The notes under the pieces were generated by a model, which saw nothing but the letters and a program-made list of their open reading frames with translations, had not been told where the DNA came from and did not search any database. From Macrostomum hystrix (lineage: Eukaryota > Animalia > Platyhelminthes), in NCBI GenBank assembly GCA_950097015.1, contig CATNEN010000008.1:1674001-1738000 (forward strand): DNA of 64,000 bases, in the 5' to 3' direction. Both the position numbers and the translations under genes were made by a program. Of this stretch, positions 8,981 through 36,068 are shown in pieces (within the stretch, counting starts at the first letter, position 1; the number at the start of each line of letters is the position of its first letter).

Positions 8981-9405
8981 GGGGTCAGATGCAACCCAAG
9001 GGGTGAGAAAGAGAGCAGGCTGAGGGTCAGAGGTTTAGAGCGATATCTGAAGGCTTTCACTCCCGGTCTCATATTGAGCGTCTTATTCTCATTTTGATAT
9101 TTCATTTTTAGTCTATGGCCAAGCCATCCCTGCAGCCAAGACTGGGCTTGCTCTGGCCGTGGCTAGCCTTCTGGCCTTGCTTGCGATCCTATGCAGTCGT
9201 ATTTTGAATGTCTAAAGTCTTATCTAGAGCGCCAAAACCGATATAGAAGTATGCTGCTTGATCTGTATGTAGGTATTTTCGCGAAAATACGGATATGTTG
9301 ACAAACGATGGTAAATGCATATTTTTGTGAATGTTGAACTTGAACTTGAACTTGAAACTTGAATTAGCATGGCTATGTTGTTTTCGCGAAATAGACATAG
9401 ACATT

Positions 9406-9840
9406 TTATCTATTAGTATTAAGGTTGAAGTATCGATTCAATCCAGCTCGAATGCAAATCAATGTTGGAGGTGCGTAGAACAGACCCTCCTGTGTTCTTA
9501 GAGTTGAATAAAAGAGGCGCAGATAGTTGTTCAAAATAGTTGGTGGTACTCGCACCAGATCAGACGACAGTTGCTTATCAGTCAAAAACGTTTGGAACCG
9601 CGCCACTGCGTCTTCCATCTGCCTCGCAGATGATTTTGGTATTCCTTCACGTTCAATCTCTCTAAGTTCCTCGAGCGCATCTTCATCGAGGTCCAGGATT
9701 TCTTCCGCATCTAGCCTTCGAGCAAACTCGCCACTTAGTTCCTCCAGATAACGTGTTGCAGATTCCGAAGTCACCCAGTTCAGCTCTTCAGTTGATAATG
9801 CGCTGACCAGTTGATCGGGTAGATTTGCTAAGTTCAACAT
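9406..9840 (-). pseudogene. Crypton tyrosine recombinase, N-terminal (core-binding) part only
   Basis: IPKSS...F..FL...LNNYLRLFYSTLRTQEGLFYAPPTLICIRAGLNRY matches the N-terminal pattern of the full Crypton at 29.4 kb. The catalytic domain is absent. Confidence 0.8.
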
Positions 9841-10060
9841 TTTAACACTCCTGTATTAAAGATCTGTTGTCCCTCTCATTCTTATTTAACGAAGTTCTCT
9901 CGCTCCTCACTCTCCTTATAGTCTATGGCGCATATACCCATCAACCAATTGGAAACAAACTTAGACCATAGACATTCCAACATCTCTAACATAGGGCCCG
10001 CTAATTTCTGCATTGTCGCCCGGAATTTTCTTGCATTGCTTAAGTTACTGACAATATGAT

Positions 10061-10153
10061 TAACATAGAATTTTGCTAGTAGTCAATGCATAATTTTTCG
10101 GGCGCTTGCGCGCCCTCAAAATTCTACATTGACAACTACAAAATTCTATGTTA
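10061..10153. repeat. imperfect palindrome upstream of the truncated Crypton ORF
   Basis: TAACATAGAATTTTG...GTCAATG..AATTTT / AAAATT..CATTGAC...CAAAATTCTATGTTA arms around a GGGCGC-TTGC-GCGCCC centre. Confidence 0.85.
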
Positions 10154-10189
10154 ATGTTACATTGCTGAATAATATTCATTAATGTTTCA

Positions 10190-13100
10190 TCGCGAAAAAA
10201 AAGTGCTACTTGAATTAGCACTACTTCCACCCGCTAAAGGACATATTTTCGCAAACAAAGGCAAATGGGAGTCTTTTTTAGCGAATGTATAACTTAAAGT
10301 AGTCTTAATGTTTATTTTTTTGATGGTAATAAGGACGAATTATATTTACGATAGCGTATATAAGTTGTCGAATTAAATTGTAACTACTTTATACGACAAT
10401 GCTTACTATTTCATATGGTATTTTCGCTAAAGTTTGCCGCTTAATAGTTACGTAGGTATATTTTCGAGTATATTTTCGCGAAAATACTGATATGTTGTCG
10501 AACGAGGGAAAATGCAGTATTTTACCATAGACATTTCACCGAGTAGTTTTTCTGCAAATTGCGAAAAGTATTGATGAATGCTATTCATGAAGGTATTTTC
10601 GAAAAATAATAATAACGAGTTCTAAATGGAAAGTAAATACAGTATTTTGCGAAAAAACTGATATGTTCTTAAACGAAGGTAAGGGCAGTATTTTTGCAAA
10701 AGTTCTTGAAGTAGCGTGCATGGCTACATCTTATGGTATTTTCGCAAAAGTACATACGTATTCTCAGACGAAGTGTCAATTGTACTTTTTTACCATAGAC
10801 ACATTTAGTATTTCTGCAAATTGCCAAGAGTCATGAATTTACTTTTTTCGCAATAAGACTACTGTGTATACTATATTGAATACTTATAAAGGAAAAACAA
10901 TGGCAGTTTTTGCGAAAGTACTAACGATAGGATGACGAATATATTTTTCGCAAAAATGCTGATATGCTCTCAAAGAAGTTAACGGCAGCATTATGCAGCA
11001 GGCAGTACTCAAAGAATTTATGATTATTATTTTCTCAATATTTTTGCGAAAAACATTGCCTAAAACGCAAACGCCTTTGAGTACGGTAAAAATGATGTAT
11101 TTATGCGAAAGTACTTTGAGTATCTGTGATGAATATTTCTAATGGTAATCAAATAACCAAATAAGACTTTGTTGATTGCTTGAACTATATTAAGCAATGA
11201 TTGCTTAAAATATATTAACTTATTTATTTGCTTATTATTTACGTCAGAATTTGCAAATTACAACTTGTGTACTCATGTACGAGTTAACATTTATTAAGCC
11301 AACACGGGTGCTACTGACAGCGATCAATGTTCTGACTGAGAAGTAGATGGTATGGCAGACGATGCATTTTTTGGAATTGTAGAGTTGTAAAATATGTTTT
11401 TGCTTAACGCGCTACTTAAAGTAATGTCACAAGGAAACCTCAGCCATAACGTTTAATCTAATTTTAGAAATGAGTCATGCGCTATTTTTAGAAACAAAGT
11501 CATGTGACATGAAACCGGAGAACCGGTTCTCGACAGCTGTATTTGCTTGAATTCCAAATAAGGTAATGTTCACCTGAAAAACCCCCAAAACGCAGCTGAA
11601 CAAACAAGTTTGACCTCACTGTGCAAACATGTATGCCCAATGTAAACACCCGGTCCTAAGCCGGTTTGCCCCAAAATTTTACTATAAATATAAGCGAAAA
11701 TCCGAGCTGAGAATTCAGACTCGGAGCGGTCCACCGGACTTTAAAACACCTTACGAAGAAGAGGACTCATATCTGAGGGAATGACAAGTGGTAAGCGCTT
11801 TACTAGACAGAGTTATTTATTGCTAGCAATAGTTTTTGAATTGAACTAAGTTTACGAGAGCCACATATCGTCGATACATTTGAGAAAGGCCTCCTTTGTT
11901 TCCTAGGATACATTCCTAGAGGATTATTGATGGATTTGATTTGAGTTATCCGTTATCTTTCGGAGGTAACGATGAAGACGCCCTTCTGTAGGACCTATTA
12001 GAGATATACAAGAGAGATTTCAATTGTTCACTAGGGCGCACGTTTTTATTGTGAATTCTGAGCTCGAGGAAACCGACAAGTAATCTGATTTGCTCTCGTC
12101 ATTTATTGGCCAACAGACAAACTCAAGCAGCTGCCAGGAAGACAAAGAAGACAAGACTACAAAGACTCAAGAAACACAGACTCGAAACGTCACGGTCGAC
12201 CAGAATAAGAAGAAGAACAAGGACTACAACGACCCAGAAGACTACAAACTACTTAAGGAATAAGAAGCAATTGCAGTAAGTGTCACGTGACTGTTATAAA
12301 TTCCTAGGCAATTGTTCCCCATTGTCTAGAAGTGGGAGTTTCGTGTGTCTGATCAACACACAAAACTCTTCAGCATGTGTACAGCATAGGACTGTCCCGC
12401 AGAAGACGATCCCGCAGAAGACGCACACACGACAATAGACAGCTCAATGTTTGCACCCGCGTCTATCGAATCAGACGAAGAGTCGGATGATATTCCATAC
12501 AGTATTCGCCTCAATGTGATACGATGCAGTCGCTGCGGGTCGTCCAACCTCCGGAATTGTGCTCCAATCAAAACTCGAAACGAAGTCTGAATGATTTGTA
12601 ATAAAGTGCCTTACAACATTCGTCTTCCGAATTGAAGCTTTGCAGACTGGGCACGTATCCATTTCGCTGGTTGTTATTTAATGCTGTTGCAAACTGCTTA
12701 TAACGGAGAAATTTTACACAGATTTGTAAGCGAGAGCGCTCGGCTTCTGACTTAAGCTTCTGTCGTGACCCGTACGACCGTTTTATCACATAAACTATCA
12801 TTCTAGGTTTGTCTATGTTGAAATAGCACAATATCGAACTCATAATATATTTAACGTTGCTATATTGTCTACTCATTGTAGAGTAGGTAGTTTCGAACAG
12901 AATATGAACATAAACACGAATAATTAATTGATTTCTGATTTATGTCCACAATTTCAATCTGTATGTTAAGAAAGCACTTAAATTAGTGTTGATTATTCCA
13001 GAGGTATTTCCGCGAAAGTACATATATATTCGCAAACGAAGGTTAATGTAGTCTTTGCAAAAATACTTTAGTGCTAATACGTTTACTGTTTCTGATGGTA

Positions 13101-23698: not shown

Positions 23699-24423
23699 CT
23701 ACACAAAACAAAACTCGTACTTAATCAAACGAATAGAACACTTTCGAGCAAATAAAAAAACAAGAAATCACTTTTTAAATTACTCGTACGAGTACTGGAG
23801 ATAGTCAAGCAATTGAGAAATTTAGGGAGAACGATATGAAGCAGTGTAAAACAAAACAATACTTTGCCGCTCCGATTTTGTTTGCTGCCATTGAAAATGA
23901 GACTTTTGAGAAGCCTACTATTCAATGAACAGTCAAACACCCACAGGTATGTGAAACCATCAGATACGACTTTGCAGTGAACTATTGTGCCTTAGAATTC
24001 GGCTGAATATTTACAGCCTAATCATTATTGGCAAACCCATATTTGGTCACAGGCAGGATTACACAAAATAAAAAACTGGTCAAAAACGAAGGGGTTAAAT
24101 TTTGAATAGAAAGCGTGGGTATTCCTGCTGTGAACCAAACTCAAAGCGTCGGACATTGTTCAAAACTGTCGATAGCCACTTCATCAAAATGTTATTTTGC
24201 TGTTCATACACCTTACAGGTTGAATGATTTAAGCAAAAATGGAAATGATTATAATTATAATTAAATTGTTATAATTATTAAAATAATTAGGATAAATATG
24301 CCTAATATTTATTTTTATTATTGCTTTCATTTATAATGTTATATTATAAAATATAGTCATAAAATTTCGTTATAGTTGTTATATTTATTAACAGTTATTT
24401 ATATTGCCCATTGACCATTATTA

Positions 24424-26358
24424 GTATATTGTTATTATTTTTCCTTATCGTTATATTTCACTATATATTTCTTAGTCATGATTATTTATATGGAAATTAT
24501 GCTTTTATTATTGCTTTCATTTATAATTTTATATCATAAAATATAGTCATATAATTTAGTTATAGTTGTTTTATTTATTTACAGTTATTTATATTGCCCA
24601 TTGACCATTTATAAGCATACTGTTTTCATTTTGCCATAAAATTTTTCATTTGGGATGGTTTAATAAATTATGGATACTTTACAAGCACATGAAAACTTAC
24701 TGCTACTCACTTTCTTGTGCAGATTGAAAGCAACTTAAAGAGATAGTACAACACTGTTTTATCGGTATCCTTCTGTATATCAAATAGAAATATAGCAATG
24801 TAAACAGCATAATTAGACTCATCGTAGCTACAAACTTAATGTCGAAATGCCTTCTTATGTGACGCAGAAAATTGCGCACAAAATACTTTGATTGCAAAAT
24901 TAGTATATTCGTTAAAATTTGTGATAAACTAAATCGCATACGCCAAAATTTAAAATTAATACAACGAAGAAAAGCGAAAATTATCCACAATGAAACAACT
25001 CGAATAACCTAAAATTCAATGAAAAACGTTTAGAAAATACTTTTATGTGCTGTATATATGCCAAAGCGTACTACGTTACTATGTTTTCAATGCTAGACAT
25101 AAACTTTTGTTATACCAACGTTTTTAAATATTTCAAATAATTCAGACTTATAAAAAAATGCTAATTTTCACCTTTATTCCTATTTTTACAACTATTTCGA
25201 ATTTTCCCAGAACACACGATACATACATTCGATGTAGAATTTTGAGGCGCACAACGTTTACTCCGAGGTACTAAGCGTCTTATAGCGATGCAAAATTCAA
25301 TTTTTGGCCTAACGACAAAAACAGCCAAAAATGGACCCGAAAACACGATATTTTTTTTTGGGACCGATTTTAAAAGTTACAATAACATCTTTTGAAAAAC
25401 CTGAAGTGCCACTTCTTATACAACACCTACACATATTATTTGACACCGTTTTCAGCTAAATTAATGCGTTTGCCTCAATTCCAGACCAAATTTGCCGCAA
25501 ATTTTTACCTGTACAGGTATACAATCGGGTATTGACGCTTACCTGTTATGAGATGACACAAGTGTTATGCGTCATTTTATTGCCGCATTAAAGTGTTACT
25601 AAACGACGCCTCACTCAATGTCTTAAAATAAAGTGTTCAAAAGTTACACTAAAAGGAGTACCTTAAATTGTGAAGCCACCCGTGTGTCGTGATCACAGGT
25701 GATCTGACCTGTACAGGAAAAACGAATTTTCACGGCTTAACTGAGGTGTACATAATTAGCCAAAATATGTTGTCATTGGGGGCAAATAGGTTAAATTGGG
25801 CTAAATAGTAATATGTTTTTCGAGCGTAAAATTTTTCATGTCGAAAAAGTGCAAAAAACTGCAAAAACAACGTTTTCCACCTTTGACCTCATTTGGATCA
25901 ACAATAGTTCCACGCAGAGCTTAATTTTCAATATAAACTTTTGTCTACACACCTAGTTCTACGAGTCTGAGCAGTTTTCTGCAATTTTAGAGCGACTTTC
26001 TTACTTTTGTACTATCGTGTACAAGTACATGTATATGTACACATGTACATGTACAAATTTGAATACTGTACGAACAGAAAGTGCACATATGTACTTATCT
26101 CTAGCGTCAAATGAAAGTTCATCTAAAATGTAGTTCAGCGACACCAAGCTCATAATTGTGCGATGCAGGAGAAAAAAGTTGTACGACGATATGTTTATTC
26201 GAATTCATGTCCCTCAGAGTGCCGTAATTTGTGTTTTTCGAACCACAGCAAATAACCGTAACATATTAAGACAAATCAAGATGTACATATTGTGTGCATA
26301 TTTGTTGTGCATCTTAGCTATGCAGTTTCCTGTCATCAGCATATCGTGGATTCTTATT
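24424..26358. repeat. left arm of a ~1.9-kb near-identical inverted duplication
   Basis: The reverse complement matches 27517-29308 and, beyond the Crypton and foldback insertions, 35793-35975. Confidence 0.92.
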
Positions 26359-27516: not shown

Positions 27517-29308
27517 AATAAGAATCCACGATATGCTGATGACAGGAAACTGCATAGCTAAGATGCACAACAAATATGCGCACAATATGTACATCTTGAT
27601 TTGTCTTAATATGTTACGGTTATTTGCTGTGGTTCGAAAAACACAAATTACGACACTCTGAGGGACATGAATTCGAATAAACATATCGTCGTACAACTTT
27701 TTTCTCCTGCATCGCACAATTATGAGCTTGGTGTCGCTGAACTACATTTTAGATGAACTTTCATTTGACGCTAGAGATAAGTACATATGTGCACTTTCTG
27801 TTCGTACAGTATTCAAATTTGTACATGTACATGTGTACATATACATGTACTTGTACACGATAGTACAAAAGTAAGAAAGTCGCTCTAAAATTGCAGAAAA
27901 CTGCTCAGACTCGTAGAACTAGGTGTGCAGACAAAAGTTTATATTGAAAATTAAGCTCTGCGTGGAACTATTGTTGATCCAAATGAGGTCAAAGGTGGAA
28001 AACGTTGTTTTTGCAGTTTTTTGCACTTTTTCGACATGAAAAATTTTACGCTCGAAAAACATATTACTATTTAGCCCAATTTAACCTATTTGCCCCCAAT
28101 GACAACATATTTTGGCTAATTATGTACACCTCAGTTAAGCCGTGAAAATTCGTTTTTTCTGTACAGGTCAGATCACCTGTGATCACGACACACGGGTGGC
28201 TTCACAATTTAAGGTACTCCTTTTAGTGTAACTTTTGAACACTTTATTTTAAGACATTGAGTGAGGCGTCGTTTAGGAACACTTAAATGCGGCAATAAAA
28301 TGACGCCTAACACTTGTGTCATCTCATAACAGGTAAGCGTCAATACCCGATTGTATACCTGTACAAGCAAAAATTTGCGGCAAATTTGGTCTGGAATTGA
28401 GGCAAACGCATTAATTTAGCTGAAAACGGTGTCAAATAATATATGTAGGTGTTGTATAAGAAGTGGCACTTCAGGTTTTTCAAAAATGTCATTGTAATTT
28501 TTTAAAATCGGTCTCAAATAAAAAAAATTGATATCAAGTTTTCGGGTCCATTTTTGGCTGTTTTTGTCGTTAGGCCAAAAAGTGAATTTTGCATCGCTAT
28601 AAGACGCTTAGTACCTCGGAGTAAACGTTGTGCGCCTCGAAATTCGACATATTAGAATTCTAATTCGAAATTCCTCGAATGTATGTATCGTGTGTTCTGG
28701 GAAAATTAGAAATAGTTGTAAAAATAGGAATAAATGTGCAAATTAGCATTTTTTGTAAGTCTGTGTAATTTGAAATATTTATAAGCGTTGGTATAACAAA
28801 AGTTTATGTCTAGCATTGAAAACGTAGTAACGTAGTACGCTTAGGCATATATACAGCACATAAAATTATTTTCTAAACGTTTTTCATTGAATTTTAGGTT
28901 ATTCGAGTTGTTTCATTATGGATAATTAAATTTTCGCTTTTCTTCGTTGTATTAATTTAAAATTTTGGCGTATGCGATTTAGTTTATCACAAATTCTAAC
29001 GTATATACTAATTTTGCAATCAAAGTATTTTGTGCGCAATTCCCTGCGTCACATAAGAAGGCATTTCGACGCAGGGAATAAGAAGGTTGTAGCTACGATG
29101 AGTTTAATTATGCTGTTTACATTGCTATATTACTATCTGATATACAGAAGGATACTGATAGAACAGTGTTGTATCTCTTTAAGTTGGTTTCAATCTGCAC
29201 AAGAAAGTGAGTAGCAGTAAGTTTTCATGTGCTTGTAAAGTATCCATAATTTATCAAACCATCCCAAATTAAAAATTTTATGGCAAAATGAAAACAGTAT
29301 GCTTATAA
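27517..29308. repeat. right arm of the inverted duplication (continues at 35793-35975)
   Basis: Reverse complement of 24612-26358. The short ORFs MRCRRKKLYDD... and MRFSLSQILT... appear on opposite strands in the two arms. Confidence 0.92.
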
Positions 29309-31186
29309 GTATATGTTATTCCCCACTTGTTTTATTTATTTTGGTCGTAAGCGGCTGAGGACGCGTTTATTGGCCGAGGCGAAGCCGAGGCCAAATAAAC
29401 GTGGCCGAAGACGGTTACGGCCATAGATAAGTCAAACAAGTGGGGAATGATGTATTTATTACTCAGTTCGTGTCAAGCGAGAGGAAAGTTACGATGAAAT
29501 CCGGCAACGTACTTACCAGCGACTTATCCAGCCAAAAAACCACAATGAGTATTCCTGACGACTTACTTGACTTGACTCTGCCGGACATGGATTTTAATCT
29601 TGACCTGTTCATGGTGGCCGAAGGCGACAAACAACGTGATGGAGTGGTTTCGAGTCGGCATGCGATGATGAACGAGTTGGAGTTGAATTTGCAACTGGAG
29701 AAAGCGATACCAGAAAATACTAAAAAGAAGGCTGATTGGATCGTCGGCGTATTCAAGAATTGGCATGAGCAGAAGAAGACTGCTTGGTCAACGGGTGGTG
29801 GTCCATCATTAATGGTCCTGAAAGATCTCTCGGAGATGACGAAGCCAGATCTGAATTTTCTTCTGAAGTACTTCGTAATGGAAGTACGCAATCAGGATGG
29901 AGAACGGTACACTTCCACCACTCTCAAAGACTTTGTGTCCATGATTCAATGGTACTGGCAAAATGTGTTGAAACAAAACTGGTCAATCTGGAGGGACGAC
30001 GCCTTCCGGGAAACCCGTGTCGCATTGGATGCGGCTATGAAGGTGGCTACCAGAGAAGGCAAAGGTGCTCGCTTGAACAAGGCTGAAACAATTCCAAATA
30101 CGATTGAGTACAAACTATGGGCTGATGGTGTGCTGGGTGTGACGACGCCGCGCAGCCTACTAAACGCCGTCGTGTGGCTGTTAGGGAAACATTTTGCCCT
30201 GCGTGGCGGTGCGGAACTACGTGACCTAGAATTTGACAGGCAGATTCAACTGGAGTCTGTTGGATGCCACGAGTGCATCGTCTACAGAGAAAATTGCGTG
30301 ACCAAAACCAATCAAGGCGGTCTGAAGGGATTGCTCCGTGACCCGAAGGTAGTTCGTGCGTTTCATACGGATAATCATGAACGCTGCCCAGTGTGTATCT
30401 ACAAAGAGTACACGACAAAGCGTCCTCCTAATAGCGAAGCCGCCTTGTTCTTGGCGGTGAATCGGTCGTGGTCGCCTGGTTCAGCCTGTTCATGGTTCAT
30501 GCGATCTCCTGTCGGACGGCACACTCTCGCAGAGACAGTAAAGACATGTGTCAAACTAGTTGCACCTGAGGATACCAGCAAGTATACCAACCAGAGTTTG
30601 CGCAAAACGGCTGCAACAAGACTTCATGAAGCCGGTGTCGAACGTGCCGACATTTGTCGCGTCACCGGCCACAGCTCCTCGGCTCTTGAAAGGTATATCG
30701 GTCAATCCGTGACTAAGCAGAAGGAGGCCTCGGCAATCATTGCCGCAAGAGAAGTGAACCAAGTGACAAACATCAACGCTGGTGGAGATTCCATGACGCA
30801 CATAGTCTGCCAGAGCCAGGCCTCTGCCGTCATTACTACCACTGGAGCTACTACTGCTACCTCTTCTAATGTTGTTGCCCACCAAGGACAACAGTCAACT
30901 GTCGCCGTCAACTCCGACAGTCCTAGTCCTAAGAAGATGCGAATCGAGATCTGTGGCGAATCGAATAAGGTCACGATTACTTTCGATTAACAATTTTCGT
31001 TTTTGAGAACTCAATGACAAAAGTGCAGTACTTCGTTCGTTCTTCGTTTCTTACACGTTATTTCGTTCAAACAGAAACTCTAAAGTACTCGGGCCAATAA
31101 ATAATTTATTGTCCCGGCCAAATAAATTTCTCTCGCATCAAATAAATGCTTTCCTTAGTCTATGACCGGGCCTAACTGGGCAATAA
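29309..31186 (+). mobile_element. Crypton (tyrosine-recombinase DNA transposon), apparently complete
   Basis: The empty site gcttATAA|atggtcaatggg is seen at 24596-24615 (minus strand). The element is bounded by ATAA on both sides with no long TIR, and has a 5' palindrome at 29318-29449. Confidence 0.88.
29440..30990 (+). CDS. Crypton tyrosine recombinase (DUF3504-type), uninterrupted ORF
   Basis: IPENTKKK..W...F..W, FVMEVRNQDGERY, FALRGGAELRDL (R), TKTNQGG (K), CPV, PVG, TNQSLRKT (Q at the HxxR His), VTGH (H), LERY (Y). The true start is probably the ATG at 29493 or 29545. Confidence 0.92.
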   Translation: MGNDVFITQFVSSERKVTMKSGNVLTSDLSSQKTTMSIPDDLLDLTLPDMDFNLDLFMVAEGDKQRDGVVSSRHAMMNELELNLQLEKAIPENTKKKADWIVGVFKNWHEQKKTAWSTGGGPSLMVLKDLSEMTKPDLNFLLKYFVMEVRNQDGERYTSTTLKDFVSMIQWYWQNVLKQNWSIWRDDAFRETRVALDAAMKVATREGKGARLNKAETIPNTIEYKLWADGVLGVTTPRSLLNAVVWLLGKHFALRGGAELRDLEFDRQIQLESVGCHECIVYRENCVTKTNQGGLKGLLRDPKVVRAFHTDNHERCPVCIYKEYTTKRPPNSEAALFLAVNRSWSPGSACSWFMRSPVGRHTLAETVKTCVKLVAPEDTSKYTNQSLRKTAATRLHEAGVERADICRVTGHSSSALERYIGQSVTKQKEASAIIAAREVNQVTNINAGGDSMTHIVCQSQASAVITTTGATTATSSNVVAHQGQQSTVAVNSDSPSPKKMRIEICGESNKVTITFD

Positions 31187-33835
31187 ATGGTCTATGGGAC
31201 GTTGGCGACATTTTACCGCGCGGTAAAAACCGCTAACTTTACCGCATAGTAATGTCAACACATTACCCTGCGGTAAAGTTAGCGGTTTTTTCCGCACTGT
31301 TTATAACATCTAAAAAACCGCAGTGTTTAAATAACCTCGATCATTGCAGGCTTTGACTATGCGGTGGAGGACTATGCGGAATTTACCGCACTGTTTAATT
31401 AACCTCATTTCAGGCTTTGACTATGCCGTGAACTATGCGGAATTTACCGCACTGTTTAAATAACCTCATTGCAGGCATTTCAGTCGGGGTAATTAGTCTT
31501 GTTGCATTGTGCACGTCTGTAATGACAAAAAGTTCCACAGCGAAAACTCGTCCAGAGCCAAAACAGTAAGCAAATAGTAACTGCAGGATGCTGACGCAAG
31601 GCGTATTTCGGTACAAAAATTATGAAATTAGTCAACGGACTGAATTGCAAATGACGGAGCGACATTGCAGTCAATGTCTCTTCCTTTAAATCCCCGATTA
31701 AAACTTTAGAGTTATGTGGAATACTTTTTCGAAAGGTACTGTGGTAGTGTAGTTTGATTATTTTATGCTACGTTTTTTATGGTACCTTCGTTTTACTGCA
31801 ATGTTCTTACAAATTCGTTAGTCTCAAATCAGGTGCTTGATTTATTTACCGATTTGTTAATAGGGCTCGCACACGGTACTTACGCCACCTAATCTAGTTT
31901 AGAAGCACCAGTGTAGCGTACATTTACAAAGAGAGTTATTACTTATTATTATTACGTAAATTATATTTAAAAAATTGAATATTGTCATGCAAAGTTAAGT
32001 AACGAAATACTGATTGTAGTAGGCCGGCATATGGATGCTTTTATTATTAAAAAGTCAAATTTGTACCCATGCTCTTTGTTTAAATGCAGTAAATTTTTGA
32101 AGTATGTAGAATAATCAATAATATTCTGTCAAATGAAATCATTCATTTAAAAAAATGTGTGTATAAAGGACTGCAATTCACGTGAGACAAATAAATGCGC
32201 CAGTGTGGCGTAAAGCAAATCACTAATAACTGAGTAAGAATGTGTTTAAGTTTTTGGTTAGTTTTTTTGAGGCTGTGACCTGATCTGATCTACTAAAAAC
32301 GCCCAGCAAGGACTGGAGAGTAAAGACACCAGTGCCTACTTGAATCTGACTTGAATTGCTTAAATTAAGAACAAAATACACAACCAAGTACTTAACTCAA
32401 CTAAAATCTAGGCTTGGTCAGACTCTATTATACTTAAGCAATATATGCTGTCTTATATCTGGTATAGTGTATTTACTGACTACATTATTTAATATAATGT
32501 GTGTTTTCTTAAAAACTATATTATAGAATTTCCCTACATCTTTTATACCGGTTCTCCTTTTTAGCACTAGCATATTTTCAGAAACAGGTACAAAATATTA
32601 TTTGGTCTTGACACGGCCATAGCACCGATATTGACGATTGCTGATATTAGAACATCCCATTTTTCAACAGGGACCAGCGCACGGCAATATCCGACATATT
32701 CTAGCGCAATGCACCGACGTGTCTCTAGCCGCAACCCAGCCGCATCACTTTTTTAAATCACTTGTACCACTTGCAAAATCCGTCTTTTCTAATAGATTTT
32801 GACAAGATTTAATTGTACCACACGTCAAATCATCTTCATATTGCTATTCATGTCACTTTTGAAGCCTTCAAATATATTTCCGGATTTAAAAAAATCGGTG
32901 CGGCTGGCATTGGGCTGATCACTAGCGTCCTTGCTTTTGACTAGATTCCTGTACCGTTTTTTAATTTATAAAATTTCAGCAAAATGTGCATATTTTGAGC
33001 TGAAAAGTTGATCTGAACAAGCTTTAATAAGTAAGAAATCATCGTCTGAAGTTTTAATGAAGTCATTCCCGGTAGCAAATGGTCTTCTCTCTCCAAAAAT
33101 AGAATACATACGCTCGTACAGCCTGTACCACATTTGTACCACCTCAAGCACATATTTTTATACAACTCTGTGCAAAATTAAGCATTTTGATCAAATGGTT
33201 CGAAAGTTCTAGACAAAACCCTTCGTTCACATTTTTTCGCGTGTGCTTTCTGAATTTGACCCGGAATTTTGTGATACTGAGAATAAGACGAATCGGACTT
33301 ACTTCTTGTATGACGTATGTTATTTTGGGTTTTGCAAAATTCCGATGGTAAATATATATCTTGCAGCATCCGATTATTCTAAAGGCACCACTACTAAAAT
33401 ATTGTTTTAATTCAATCAGCTAAAGCTTCGTTGTATAATTTTAAGTTGGTCACGCACTTCAAATTTTCTTTTTGTCAAGCTGTTATTTGCACGTGACCTA
33501 ATATTATTCTCTGAGAAGCGGTACATTGTAGATCATTCTGCTATGAATCTGTTGTTACGGCTTCATGCAAGGCCGCTGAAAGTGATAATTATGTAAATTA
33601 GTATACTTAATTAGTAATAAGAAATAAATAAATAATAAAAATTAAAATAAATTATTAACATTAACTTCCTTTAATTAAATAATTTAATTAAATAATTTCA
33701 TATATTATTTTTATTTAATAACTTACTAACTTGACTAGTGTAATGGTCATTGTCTCAGCTATCCAGCTAAGAATAAACTTAGTCAAACGGTCTAAGCTCC
33801 AAGCAGTTGGTTAGTTATTTTTATTATTTGACACT

Positions 33836-34072
33836 CAGCGGCTCACACTCACTTTGACCGTCAACGGCAGCAAGATGGAGGTACTACACCTGGGATTTGA
33901 GGACCCACCGCCCCTGGCCCTGCCCAACGGTGAGGTCATCGCGGCGTGCAGCGACTTCCGCTACTTGGGTGTCCCGGTGATGAGCCCGGATGTGATCATC
34001 GCGGACAAGAAGACCCAGGCCTGGCGCGCCGTTCAAAAACTTAAGCCAGTCTACACCTCTGGAGCGCGAGAC
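33836..34072 (+). pseudogene. RTE-type LINE reverse-transcriptase thumb fragment
   Basis: LTVNGSKMEVLHL...DFRYLG...QAWRAVQKLKPVY resembles the IN..KTE / FKYLG / AW.A..KL motifs of RTE-type RTs. Confidence 0.65.
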
Positions 34073-34141
34073 CGCATAGTCAAAGCCTGAAATGAGGTTA
34101 TTTAAACAGTGGGGAAAAAACCGCATAGTTCACGGCATAGT

Positions 34142-34805
34142 TGTGACGATTAAAACACAAAGGACGAAGTCGCAGTCAGAGCAGCGGCAATTGTAAGTTC
34201 GGCAATTCAGAGTCAGTAATGTCTGTGATGTAGCGGTAGCACTTTTATTCTGGGTGCACTGGGACGTCGACAAGCAGGGCGTTATGTAAGGCGTAGGAGC
34301 TCGTTAATGGTGATTGTTGGACACGAACAGAACCGAATGTAGTGGAGTGTAGTGAGAGAATGGCACAGCACGAAAACGTAGAAGGGCGAGAGTGAGAAGG
34401 TAAGGCGCGAGCGGAAAGGAAAGGAACGGAAAGAATGGCTAGAACAGAAAGAATGGCTAGAACCGTGAGGCGCGAGCGGGCCTGAAGCCCTTGATTAAGT
34501 AAACCAGGCTAACTGAAAAACATAGCGATCGATACTTCCGACCAGTCAGAGCTCGCACGCTCATTGGCCGGGGGGGAAATACATTAAGATACGCGTAGGA
34601 AATAGCTAGAATGGCGCGATATGCGTTTATGGTTACTAACAGTAGCGCCCTAATAATTTGAGTTAATAATATAAATTAACAGAATTGGATGATATTATAC
34701 GATGAGTTAAAACGGCCCAAGCTAGTACATAATTAGGAAATTAAGCATGTAATCAACGCATAGAGTAATATTGCAGGGGCGCCTTCAACAAGTGACAACG
34801 TCACA
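34142..34805 (-). mobile_element. solo LTR (Gypsy-like), 664 bp
   Basis: TGTGACG...CGTCACA termini, a 4-bp TSD TAGT (34138-34141 and 34806-34809), and AATAAA on the minus strand. It sits inside a 61-bp repeat unit. Confidence 0.8.
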
Positions 34806-36068
34806 TAGTCAAAGCCTGAAATGAGGTTATTTAAACAGTGCGGTAAATTCCGCATAGTCCTCCACCGCATAGTCAAAGCCTGCAATGATCGAGGTTATTT
34901 AAACACTGCGGTTTTTTAGATGTTATAAACAGTGCGGAAAAAACCGCATAGTTCACCGCATAGTCAAAGCCTGAAATGAGGTTATTTAAACAGTGCGGAA
35001 AAAACCGCATAGTTCACGGCATAGTCAAAGCCTGAAATGAGGTTATTTAAACAGTGCGGAAAAAACCGCATAGTTCACGGCATAGTCAAAGCCTGAAATG
35101 AGGTTATTTAAACAGTGCGGAAAAAACCGCATAGTCCACCGCATAGTCAAAGCCTGAAATGAGGTTATTTAAACAGTGCGGTAAATTCCGCATAGTCCAC
35201 CGCATAGTCAAAGCCTGAAATGAGGTTATTTAAACAGTGCGGTAAATTCCGCATAGTCCACCGCATAGTCAAAGCCTGAAATGAGGTTATTTAAACAGTG
35301 CGGTAAATTCCGCATAGTCCACCGCATAGTCAAAGCCTGAAATGAGGTTATTTAAACAGTGCGGTAAATTCCGCATAGTTCACCGCGTAGTCAAAGCCTG
35401 CAATGAGGTTATTTAAACAGTGCGGAAAAAACCGCATAGTCCACCGCATAGTCAAAGCCTGAAATGAGGTTATTTAAACAGTGCGGTAAATTCCGCATAG
35501 TCCACCGCATAGTCAAAGCCTGAAATGAGGTTATTTAAACAGTGCGGTAAATTCCGCATAGTTCACCGCGTAGTCAAAGCCTGAAATGAGGTTATTTAAA
35601 CAGTGCGGTAAATTCCGCATAGTTCACCGCATAGTCAAAGCCTGCAATGATCGAGGTTATTTAAACACTGCGGTTTTTTAGATGTTATAAACAGTGCGGA
35701 AAAAACCGCTAACTTTACCGCAGGGTAATGTGTTGACATTACTATGCGGTAAAGTTAGCGGTTTTTACCGCGCGGTAAAATGTCGCCAACGTGTCAATGG
35801 GCAATATAAATAACTGTAAATAAATAAAACAACTATAACTAAATTATATGACTATATTTTATGATATAAAATTATAAATGAAAGCAATAATAAAAGCATA
35901 ATTTCCATATAAATAATTATGACTAAGAAATGTAAAGTGAAATATAATGATAAGGCAAAATAATAACGATATACATAAGCGCAAAGCGGGGTCAAGGGGG
36001 CGCTGAGCCCCCTTGTGGCGGGGTGGGGGCAAAGCCCCCACATGACGATAAGGTAAGGTAATCCTCTT

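Follow-up and report, generated by a model that had tools for sequence, protein, structure and literature searches.

An intact, recently mobile Crypton in Macrostomum hystrix with a candidate composite recombination site at its ends

The element, its boundaries and its copies

Positions 29309 to 31186 of the window (the whole stretch of Macrostomum hystrix DNA that was analysed, 64 kb) hold an intact, recently mobile Crypton, a DNA transposon that uses a tyrosine recombinase (Table 1). It occupies one arm of a local inverted duplication, and the opposite arm still has the unfilled site. Its left end, GTATATG-TTATTCCCCACTTG, starts at 29309 and its right end, TAACTGGGCAATAA, finishes at 31186, exactly as a first-pass annotation of this DNA had placed them. 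The 27 nt preceding the insert are an exact match to the minus strand of the mirror arm (24635-24609), which runs straight into ATGGTCAATGGG, as had been described. The 12 nt following the insert (31187-31198) also match the mirror arm at 11 of 12 positions, which makes the empty site fuller than previously seen. Directly past this right flank there is a second, unrelated insertion (31199-35792), and the mirror-arm sequence picks up again at 35793. Both junctions and the empty site have only ATAA in common, and no target-site duplication is present, again in agreement with the annotation. Like other Cryptons, this one, with its fixed termini GTATATG... and ...GGGCAATAA, lacks long terminal repeats and target-site duplications and has only a short word common to terminus and target. 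A true right end past 31186, taking in GTCTATGG, was ruled out because the copy in X1/X7 diverges at 31187/8, and GTCTATGG was discarded as part of the element because the word is present in the mirror arm, where there is no element.

The same element was found in contigs of four public studies. Its left end recurs there at four more flanks and its right end at one more, for totals of five left and two right flanks when the window is counted, those outside it all coming from short contigs. The copies are 99.5-99.9% identical and the overlap between element and left flank in the other copies is 2, 4, 2 and 0 nt. As is characteristic of Cryptons, copies whose ends are identical lie scattered at unrelated sites, and neither the X1 nor the X5b flank is related to the element. 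The recurrence of the same ends next to four other left flanks shows that the boundaries are real and that the element moved recently. Different boundaries in other copies, a possibility raised in the first-pass annotation, were not seen in these contigs, the ends being shared across samples. All the statements of that annotation about the sequence of this element were borne out; of its interpretation, the intact Crypton-type element with exact ends and a visible unfilled site stands, the loxP-like attachment site stands in part and the relaxed target needs do not stand, as detailed below.

The junction expected from a circle or a tandem, CTGGGCAATAA joined to GTATATGTTATT (31186 joined back to 29309), was not found among the joints or loose ends listed for the contigs of X1, X5, X6 and X7, and this is weak evidence because contigs drop rare forms. 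In run X1 the hairpin core of the left end had a depth about tenfold that of the element body, and this core is common to many related Crypton families. In the JGI metagenome contigs the left-end 18-mer was located at seven loci (L001-L007), all of them chance matches without other similarity.

Table 1 Coordinates of the Crypton, its internal features and its target in the 64-kb window
Feature	Positions	Strand	Basis
Unfilled target in the mirror arm, reading ATAA directly followed by ATGGTCAATGGG	24597-24612	-	
ATAA in the left flank, equal to the last four element bases (31183-31186)	29305-29308	+	
Whole Crypton, 1,878 bp	29309-31186	+	Bounded by the mirror-arm empty site; same ends in contigs of other samples
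Spacer GTATATG of the joined-end site; crossover point at its 5' edge	29309-29315	+	
Arm A2, CAAGTGGGGAATAA on the minus strand; outer ascending hairpin stem	29316-29329	-	
Long imperfect hairpin/palindrome of the left end, 135 nt	29316-29450	+	Fold; inverted repeats I3 and I4
Conserved hairpin apex, GAGGCGAAGCCGAG	29376-29389	+	Identical 14-mer in L009 and L012
CCATAGAT word, descending hairpin arm (reverse complement of ATCTATGG)	29420-29427	+	Word also present at this place in L008 and L010
Arm A3, CAAGTGGGGAATGA; hairpin partner of A2, 13/14 to A2	29437-29450	+	
Arm A4, GAACTGAGTAATAA on the minus strand; 5 nt past the hairpin, plus strand complementary to A1	29456-29469	-	
Recombinase ORF, 498 aa from the first ATG (29494); open frame from GTG 29440	29494-30990	+	
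3' palindrome CGGGCCAATAAAT-A-ATTTATTGTCCCG, with the family-specific GGCCAATAA word	31090-31116	+	Inverted repeats I16 and I25
GTCTATGA word, 21 nt inside the right end	31158-31165	+	Homologous words in L008
Arm A1, TAACTGGGCAATAA; ends exactly at the right boundary, 11/14 to A2 and 11/14 to A4	31173-31186	+	
Right flank ATGGTCTATGGG, 11/12 to the mirror arm; contains GTCTATGG, 3 nt off the element end	31187-31198	+	

The encoded recombinase

The frame between 29440 and 30990 is open, as claimed before, and gives 516 aa if read from the GTG. It is the one long sense ORF of the element; any other ORF of at least 80 aa overlaps it, either in a different frame or on the opposite strand. Pfam comparison identified DUF3504 (2.8e-22) and QRICH1 (3e-8), together with a weak match to Phage_integrase. 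A tyrosine recombinase is encoded and there is neither a reverse transcriptase nor any other transposase, as in Cryptons generally, and the animal host, the DUF3504 recombinase and the lack of a C-terminal DNA-binding domain are those of the CryptonA group. An AlphaFold model of the protein (pLDDT 74) matched Cre-loxP complexes with E = 1.7e-8 and a TM score of 0.55-0.59 over ~370 columns; Cre was the best structural match outside QRICH1, with both domains covered, and IntI, XerA/H and the Tn1549 integrase were also among the fold matches. As modelled, the encoded protein is a two-domain, Cre-like tyrosine recombinase of the DUF3504/QRICH1 type.

In the alignment the catalytic residues R237, K271, R370, H393 and Y401 are present and conserved. 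The histidine of the HxxR motif (histidine II) is replaced by Gln367 in the window Crypton and in P0001, P0002, P0003, P0005 and P0006, whereas P0004 and the molluscan relatives have His at this position; judged from the aligned sequences, Gln takes the place of this first histidine throughout the closest clade of the recombinase. The best protein relatives have 49-52% identity by BLASTP (50-58% in the alignment) and the nearest named ones belong to Mytilus and Lottia. An exact-protein look-up of the ORF retrieved no record, and the viral contigs searched with the protein alignment gave a single match, 40 aa long and unrelated.

Arms, hairpin and target sites

When the two ends are joined, 11 of 14 positions agree between the right arm and the reverse complement of the left arm and the spacer is 7 nt long, so that the inverted arms reported in the first-pass annotation are real. 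Such arms are rare by chance: when pairs of 40-mers from the window were joined and searched near the junction for 14-nt arms with a spacer of 5-9 nt, only 0.25% of 20,000 random junctions reached 11/14 or better. In this the joined ends resemble loxP- and FRT-type sites, with inverted arms of 11-14 bp and a 6-8-bp spacer at the crossover. The definable loxP-like attachment site that had been proposed holds, as regards the existence of inverted arms at the ends. Those are, however, two of four arms, the outer tier of an interrupted palindrome of ~180 nt, and the arm-to-arm symmetry (the likeness of A1 to A2) was not found in the distantly related elements L009 and L012, whose boundaries are inferred. 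A4 matches the right end at 12/14 with a shift of 1 nt (shuffled-query P = 0.011). The four-arm pattern matches those four places only in the 64 kb, being a pattern built from the same four arms.

The most conspicuous structure is the long hairpin at the left end. The DNA fold of 156 nt around it (29305-29460) has -44.8 kcal/mol and z = -10.97, none of 200 shuffles being as good, and the paired stem extends over ~29318-29448. Its apex contains a GCGAAGC mini-hairpin (29379-29385); d(GCGAAGC) is a very stable DNA mini-hairpin and the RNA form is far less stable (PMC13037366). The GGCCAATAA word of the 3' palindrome is found in the inner hairpin too. Searches of Rfam gave matches to miRNA hairpins only, far below threshold, and scans for bacterial-type promoters and terminators gave nothing above chance.

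Homologous hairpins with different stems were found in L009, L012 and L010. The z-score is -11.0 in this element, -13.4 in L009 and -11.0 in L012, and in these three the stems differ and the apex is kept; as in attC sites, this is an imperfect palindrome whose structure is conserved and whose sequence is variable. In the same three elements, the 3' UTR contains the best inverted match to the 24 nt past the hairpin, with 12/14 in the window Crypton (P = 0.011), 14/14 in L009 (17/17 in full, P <0.0005) and 12/14 in L012 (P = 0.0105). Family-specific inner words are present in both the 5' hairpin and the 3' palindrome, and in L008 the right end and the hairpin stem have a common family-specific ATTAA word (read by eye). 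The end comparison covered the relatives with usable ends, which L011, L013 and L014 lack. In sequence comparison, the hairpin, its GCGAAGC cap and the complementarity of the right end to the post-hairpin segment are conserved across relatives.

As for the targets, the relaxed needs suggested by the first-pass annotation were not sustained. Three of the five insertion sites are 3-14 nt from a GTCWATGG word, and only 0.77% of the window positions have one within 15 nt (P ~5e-6). Two of these GTCWATGG-adjacent sites are inside the ends of related Cryptons, and the flanks in X5a and X6 can be aligned with the window Crypton's own right end and descending hairpin arm. With three of five sites near this word, and often in the ends of other Cryptons, the choice of target is not relaxed. 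The first eight bases of the element (GTATATGT, 29309-29316) match the word GTCTATGG at 6/8.

Candidate mechanisms and known systems

The explanation that we favour, and to which we give about an even chance of being right, is a composite site in which a circle, a joined-end palindrome of arms and hairpin, and an AA-directed joining without spacer match are combined. The element would exit as a circle and its joined ends would create a recombination site, made up of A1, the 7-nt spacer and the inverted A2 and backed by A3 and A4 beyond the 135-nt hairpin, A1-A4 and the hairpin together making one interrupted palindrome of ~180 nt. The recombinase would bind these candidate arms and cut the top strand at the border between A1 and the spacer, after AA, and the cut end would then be joined to an AA in the target, no spacer match being needed. 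New insertions may be attracted by related sequences, resembling the arms or bearing GTCWATGG, in the termini of resident Cryptons.

It seems unlikely that the two 14-bp arms and the 7-bp spacer are the whole attachment site, with exchange across the spacer into nearly any target. The 11/14 arms with their 7-nt spacer at the exact junction, the crossover point at the arm/spacer border and the Cre-like two-domain fold without an extra arm-binding domain are what such a site would have, but the spacer does not fit. The right junctions read ATGGTCT and ACAGTTT, which agree with GTATATG at 1/7 and 2/7, and GTATATG is found on the left in 5/5 copies and never on the right. Canonical Cre- or lambda-type exchange is intolerant of mismatched spacers, and the element is a poor fit to exchange of this homologous-spacer kind because GTATATG is not common to any target. 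Furthermore, two more arms and the conserved hairpin adjoin the putative minimal site, L009 and L012 (with their inferred boundaries) lack the arm symmetry, and the insertions cluster beside GTCWATGG words. Carry-over of flank bases as in Tn916 was ruled out, GTATATG being constant across copies.

Similarly improbable, by analogy with attC and with CTX phage/XerCD, is a site made of a single folded strand. Here the top strand would fold, nucleated and capped by GCGAAGC, and the A1:A4 and A2:A3 stems would mimic core-site arms round an unpaired 7/5-nt centre; the exchange would involve one strand pair, at the border of stem and loop, with replication completing the process. Several observations point in this direction: the structure is kept and the sequence is not in three families with different stems (z = -11 to -13), the right end is complementary to the post-hairpin segment in three families, the crossover is on one fixed side of the spacer without spacer homology, and the integron integrase is among the fold matches. 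The apex is a DNA-specific stable mini-hairpin, far less stable as RNA (PMC13037366), and the active Chlamydomonas Crypton excises cleanly and yet increases in copy number (PMC9977147). On the other side, the same complementarity is expected in duplex DNA from any palindrome of protein-binding sites, and there are no conserved bulged bases as in attC. Joining the ends does extend the left-end hairpin across the junction, but the gain in folding is small (-57.2 vs -51.3 kcal/mol). The long cross-junction palindrome suggested by the fold (~38 nt) was rejected, since local alignment backs 13 nt only (11/13, unanchored P = 0.06) and the match is not significant past them; from the sequence we claim a putative cross-junction match at arm length only. 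If true, a folded-strand site would be a eukaryotic counterpart of integron attC sites and CTX-phage integration, and would account for the lack of spacer homology and of duplication, for the fixed spacer side and for the gain of copies despite clean excision.

A role in gene expression (promoter, pairing of 5'UTR and 3'UTR, polyadenylation sites) for the hairpin, for the complementarity of A4 to A1 and for the AATAAA-rich words, with recombination depending on the terminal AA/ATAA alone, is in our view doubtful to much the same degree. In the model of Goodwin for fungal Cryptons a short terminal word reportedly suffices for recombination. The hairpin is just 5' of the ATG, with A4 24 nt before it, and AATAAA is found inside the 3' words. 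Known Cryptons have been described with a short terminal direct repeat only (PMC3212892; PMC8969392), and in the active CryptonF-1_cRei the terminal word is CACCG and the target CAYCG (PMC9977147). Against such a role, A1 reaches exactly to one recombination boundary, with A2 beginning 7 nt from the opposite one, new copies enter the same modules of other Cryptons, the apex is a stable hairpin of the DNA type and not of the RNA type, and an AA match of 2-4 nt is insufficient alone for fixed element ends.

Finally, an enzyme inactivated by Gln in place of histidine II, with copies spread by the recombinase of a related Crypton or by segmental duplication, is very improbable: position 367 is His in P0004 and the molluscan relatives, and there are many related families with the same hairpin core (at ~tenfold the depth of the element body in X1), but the Gln is kept in six relatives with intact ORFs, Cre with His289 substitutions still recombines (PMC4381057), and segmental duplication is excluded for the copies because the other flanks are unrelated to one another.

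Among known elements, the window Crypton is like the CryptonA group (PMC3212892) in its single gene for a DUF3504-type tyrosine recombinase and in the lack of reverse transcriptase, GCR1_C domain, long terminal repeats and target-site duplication. No terminal repeats of any kind were found in animal Cryptons (PMC3212892, Kojima and Jurka 2011), whereas this element has exact ends, a long GCGAAGC-capped hairpin and four arms, and its right end is complementary to the post-hairpin segment; it also differs in being just 1.9 kb long and in the Gln at histidine II. CryptonF-1_cRei of Chlamydomonas, the first Crypton seen moving (PMC9977147), is similar in the short word of terminus and target (CACCG/CAYCG there, AA or ATAA here), the clean empty sites and the agreement with the tyrosine-recombinase model of Goodwin et al. 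It belongs, however, to group F, with a GCR1_C domain, and its word is of 5 nt and well conserved, in contrast to the 0-4 nt and the preference for a GTCWATGG neighbourhood seen here.

The likeness to Cre/loxP includes the two-domain fold, inverted arms of 13-14 bp, a spacer of 7-8 bp and the cut at the arm/spacer border. Cre, however, requires identical spacers in both partners and has neither accessory arms nor hairpin, whereas here a palindrome of 180 nt surrounds the site and the targets do not resemble the spacer. With attC/IntI and CTX attP/XerCD the element has in common an imperfect palindrome with conserved structure, a crossover at a short conserved word and no need of spacer homology; its hairpin is far longer, has no conserved extrahelical bases and is found in a eukaryotic host, and the folded form here is a predicted one. 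The integrases of Tn916 and Tn1549 are also tyrosine recombinases that insert a circle (a putative one here) into AT-rich targets without spacer homology, but their coupling sequences derive from the flanks and change with each move, unlike GTATATG, which is constant and always on the left.

To our knowledge, no other class of eukaryotic DNA transposons is understood as poorly as Cryptons. The usual account of animal Cryptons gives them no recognisable termini (PMC3212892), and curators are advised that the only landmark is a handful of shared bases (PMC8969392). The element described here is compact (1.9 kb) and offers base-exact ends, a visible unfilled site and several independent insertions, and its conserved end architecture provides a concrete candidate docking site for animal Cryptons. 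Recognition by an animal Crypton recombinase can now be tested at the bench with defined oligonucleotides and the 498-aa protein. As a small eukaryotic integrase the enzyme would also merit attention, provided that it works without spacer homology.

Boundaries of the element and its copies in other samples

The Crypton occupies one side of a large inverted duplication (94-99% identity between the arms), and the mirror arm preserves its unfilled site. The first-pass annotation had described an intact element with ends GTATATG-TTATTCCCCACTTG and TAACTGGGCAATAA and a visible empty target, and both ends were confirmed to the base. The 27 nt preceding the insert have an exact copy in the mirror arm that runs straight into ATGGTCAATGGG, and the 12-nt right flank is identical to the mirror-arm continuation at 11 positions; therefore the insert is exactly the stretch listed in the table, give or take the shared ATAA, and the target was not duplicated. 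Filled and empty sites indeed show no target-site duplication and have only ATAA in common. The 516-aa frame is uninterrupted, as annotated, when read from its GTG (498 aa from the first ATG). We have high confidence that the Crypton is intact and was recently mobile, and that its boundaries are correct.

Positions of the features in the window
Feature	Position (strand)	Remarks
Crypton	29309-31186	1,878 bp
Open frame of the recombinase	29440-30990	GTG start; first ATG at 29494
C-terminal tail	30930-30987	KKMR...ITF, residues 480-498
Left-end hairpin	29316-29450	-44.8 kcal/mol as DNA, z = -10.97; outer stem A2
Arm A1 (right end)	31173-31186	
Arm A2	29316-29329 (-)	
Arm A3	29437-29450	hairpin partner of A2
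Arm A4	29456-29469 (-)	five nt past A3
Inverted duplication, left arm	24313-26358	arms ~1.16 kb apart
Inverted duplication, right arm	27517-29308, resuming 35793-35974	holds both insertions, absent from the left arm
Copy of the 27 nt preceding the insert	24635-24609 (-)	exact
Right flank	31187-31198	mismatch to mirror arm at 31193, A to T
Second insertion	31199-35792	4.6 kb; mirror-arm sequence resumes at 35793
AT-rich unit (~190 bp), left arm	24313-24608 (-)	two tandem copies
AT-rich unit, right arm	35793-35974	one copy
Element's own word copies	31158; 29420	GTCTATGA; CCATAGAT
GTCTATGG copies	2906 (+); 4544 (-)	lie in another element's long, identical inverted repeats
GTCTATGG copies	9921; 9966	within 9111-10800; make a small palindrome

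A near-identical element was found in runs of at least four studies, including two organism labels and two environmental metagenomes. In the contigs of four sequencing runs (X1, X5, X6 and X7) aligned to the locus, the element body was 99.5-99.9% identical between runs. Here the GTATATG left end is attached to four other flanks, ...GAGAAGTGAA (X1 and X7), ...CCATAGACTGGATAA and ...GAATGGTAGAA (both X5, the latter with TA deleted in the spacer) and ...AGTCTAAAAGTTCC (X6), and the right end ...GGGCAATAA to one further flank, ACAGTTTCGCGG (X1 and X7). The ends being constant, the boundaries hold in these copies too. The left flanks of the five copies, the window's included, overlap the final bases of the element by 4, 2, 4, 2 and 0 nt. 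No circle junction (a joint back from 31186 to 29309) was found among the joints listed for the contigs of these four runs; contigs lose rare forms, so that its absence speaks only weakly against a circle. One X1 contig passes 29308 into 29 non-Crypton letters, indicating that an unfilled version of this flank exists in that sample. Furthermore, contigs in X1 covered the left hairpin (29285-29478) about ten times as deeply as the element body, and many short contigs matched 29353-29392 only, indicating that the hairpin core is common to other, more numerous elements. In three metatranscriptome runs (X14, X17 and X20, from wastewater and outdoor samples) 8-21% of the sampled words of the element were present, which hints at its transcription.

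End architecture of the element and its relatives

Joining the ends gives, as first noted, 14-nt inverted arms matching at 11 positions around a 7-nt spacer. As a control, 40-mers drawn at random from the window were joined in pairs and searched with equal freedom (14-nt arms, spacer of 5-9, near the junction); only 0.25% of 20,000 trials reached 11/14 or better. Within the left-end hairpin A2 and A3 match at 13/14, and A4 matches A1 at 11/14, or 12/14 with a 1-nt shift. A search pattern derived from all four arms matches nowhere else in the window, a result that shows specificity and not significance since the pattern was composed post hoc. A circle would carry, in this order, A1, GTATATG, A2, hairpin interior, A3, TGTAT, A4, 24 nt and ATG, and the joined ends would thus prolong the left-end palindrome across the junction. 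A longer cross-junction pairing suggested by the fold was discarded, the scored alignment supporting an arm-length match only. The best-supported reading, with chances close to even, is that the joined-end palindrome would be the recombination site.

Among related Cryptons, taken from contigs whose encoded proteins are 30-50% identical to the recombinase, L009 (z = -13.4) and L012 (z = -11.0) have a long hairpin ahead of the gene, and L010 has the inner half of one. The apex GA-GGC-GAA-GCC-GA is common to all these hairpins and that of the window element, although the stem sequences differ greatly. GCGAAGC is known as an extraordinarily stable DNA mini-hairpin (Tm 76.5 C); for the related GCGAAAGC as RNA the Tm is far lower, 39 C (PMC13037366). 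For the three elements with both ends on the contig, we compared the 24 nt after the hairpin with everything downstream, and in all three the best inverted match fell within the 3' UTR: 12/14 exactly at the right end in the window element (P = 0.011), 17/17 in full in L009 (P < 0.0005) and 13/15 in L012 (P = 0.0105). In addition, a family-specific inner word recurs in the hairpin and the 3' palindrome of each family (GGCCAATAA in the window element, GGCCATTAA in L008, GTCCCATTAT in L009 and GGACCATCA in L010); L008, a contig without the left end, has its own version of the end word. The A1-A2 similarity that gives the loxP look was not evident in L009 or L012. L009 has an additional 12/14 inverted match (182-197 and 2219-2234) just beyond the inferred ends, ~30 nt past the A1-like segment, and its true boundaries may therefore differ from the inferred ones.

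Target choice and the point of strand exchange

Relaxed target needs, as first proposed, are not supported. In the window the end of the element lies 3 nt before GTCWATGG (W = A or T), and the distance from the left end to CCATAGAC is 3 nt in an X5 copy (counting the ATAA shared with the element) and 14 nt in X6. Only 0.77% of window positions are within 15 nt of the word, against 3/5 insertion sites (P about 5e-6). The reverse-complemented X5 flank aligns to the element's own 31157-31180 (P < 0.003) and the X6 flank to 29419-29441 (P = 0.017), indicating that those copies sit in end modules of related Cryptons. At 4 nt downstream of the insertion, the window target contains TCAATGGGCAATAT, which matches A1 at 11/14. 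The element, too, carries copies of the word shortly inside each end.

The word GTCTATGG occurs 10 times in the window (1.2 expected), and the single mismatch of the right flank changes GTCAATGG to it. Every AT-rich unit starts with ATGGTCAATGGGCAATAT, containing GTCAATGG and an 11/14 match to the right-end arm, so that the unit resembles a compact Crypton right end. The second insertion, unrelated to the Crypton, is bounded by perfect terminal inverted repeats of 168 nt, contains arrays of a 61-nt repeat and lacks any ORF of at least 100 aa. Its point of insertion is the same GTCWATGG word that adjoins the Crypton, and its flanks (GTCTATGGG left, GTCAATGGG right) resemble a 9-bp target duplication in which one base differs.

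The element-side junction is always ...ATAA/GTATATG..., the exact A1/spacer border, at which top-strand cleavage by a tyrosine recombinase would be expected. The left side carries GTATATG in all five copies, and the 7 nt following the right end (ATGGTCT and ACAGTTT) are like it at only 1/7 and 2/7 positions. The data therefore do not support canonical exchange over a spacer common to both partners, or the simple loxP analogy as stated. Either spacer mismatch would be tolerated, or a single strand-pair exchange would be finished by replication.

The recombinase and comparison with known Cryptons

Pfam assigned the protein to DUF3504 (2.8e-22) and QRICH1 (3e-8), with Phage_integrase below threshold. 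Its AlphaFold model (19 input sequences, pLDDT 74, core >85) matched best, after QRICH1, Cre in loxP complexes (E = 1.7e-8, TM 0.55-0.59, ~370 columns), with further matches to integron integrase, XerA/H and Tn1549 integrase; as modelled, the protein is a two-domain Cre-like recombinase. The alignment with relatives retains Arg237, Lys271, Arg370, His393 and Tyr401. In place of the HxxR-box His, this protein (Gln367) and its five closest relatives have Gln; the related recombinase P0004 and molluscan proteins have His. Because intact multi-copy elements conserve this Gln, we do not take it as a mark of inactivity. Cre with substitutions of the same His still recombines (PMC4381057). The C-terminal tail, conserved with the closest relatives after a disordered linker, is confidently predicted as a two-strand beta hairpin and may act as nuclear localisation signal and subunit contact.

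The only Crypton seen moving, CryptonF-1_cRei, terminates in CACCG, targets CAYCG and excises cleanly, yet gains copies (PMC9977147). Short terminal repeats are the sole Crypton landmark in a curation guide (PMC8969392), and Kojima and Jurka described short direct repeats of 4-6 bp in Cryptons of fungi and oomycetes and animal ones without terminal repeats (PMC3212892). In contrast to the latter, the window element has structured, conserved ends. Among the titles retrieved by a literature search on Cryptons and hairpins, none dealt with such an end structure. On this comparison, the element is classed as an animal (A) type Crypton whose conserved end architecture is newly visible.
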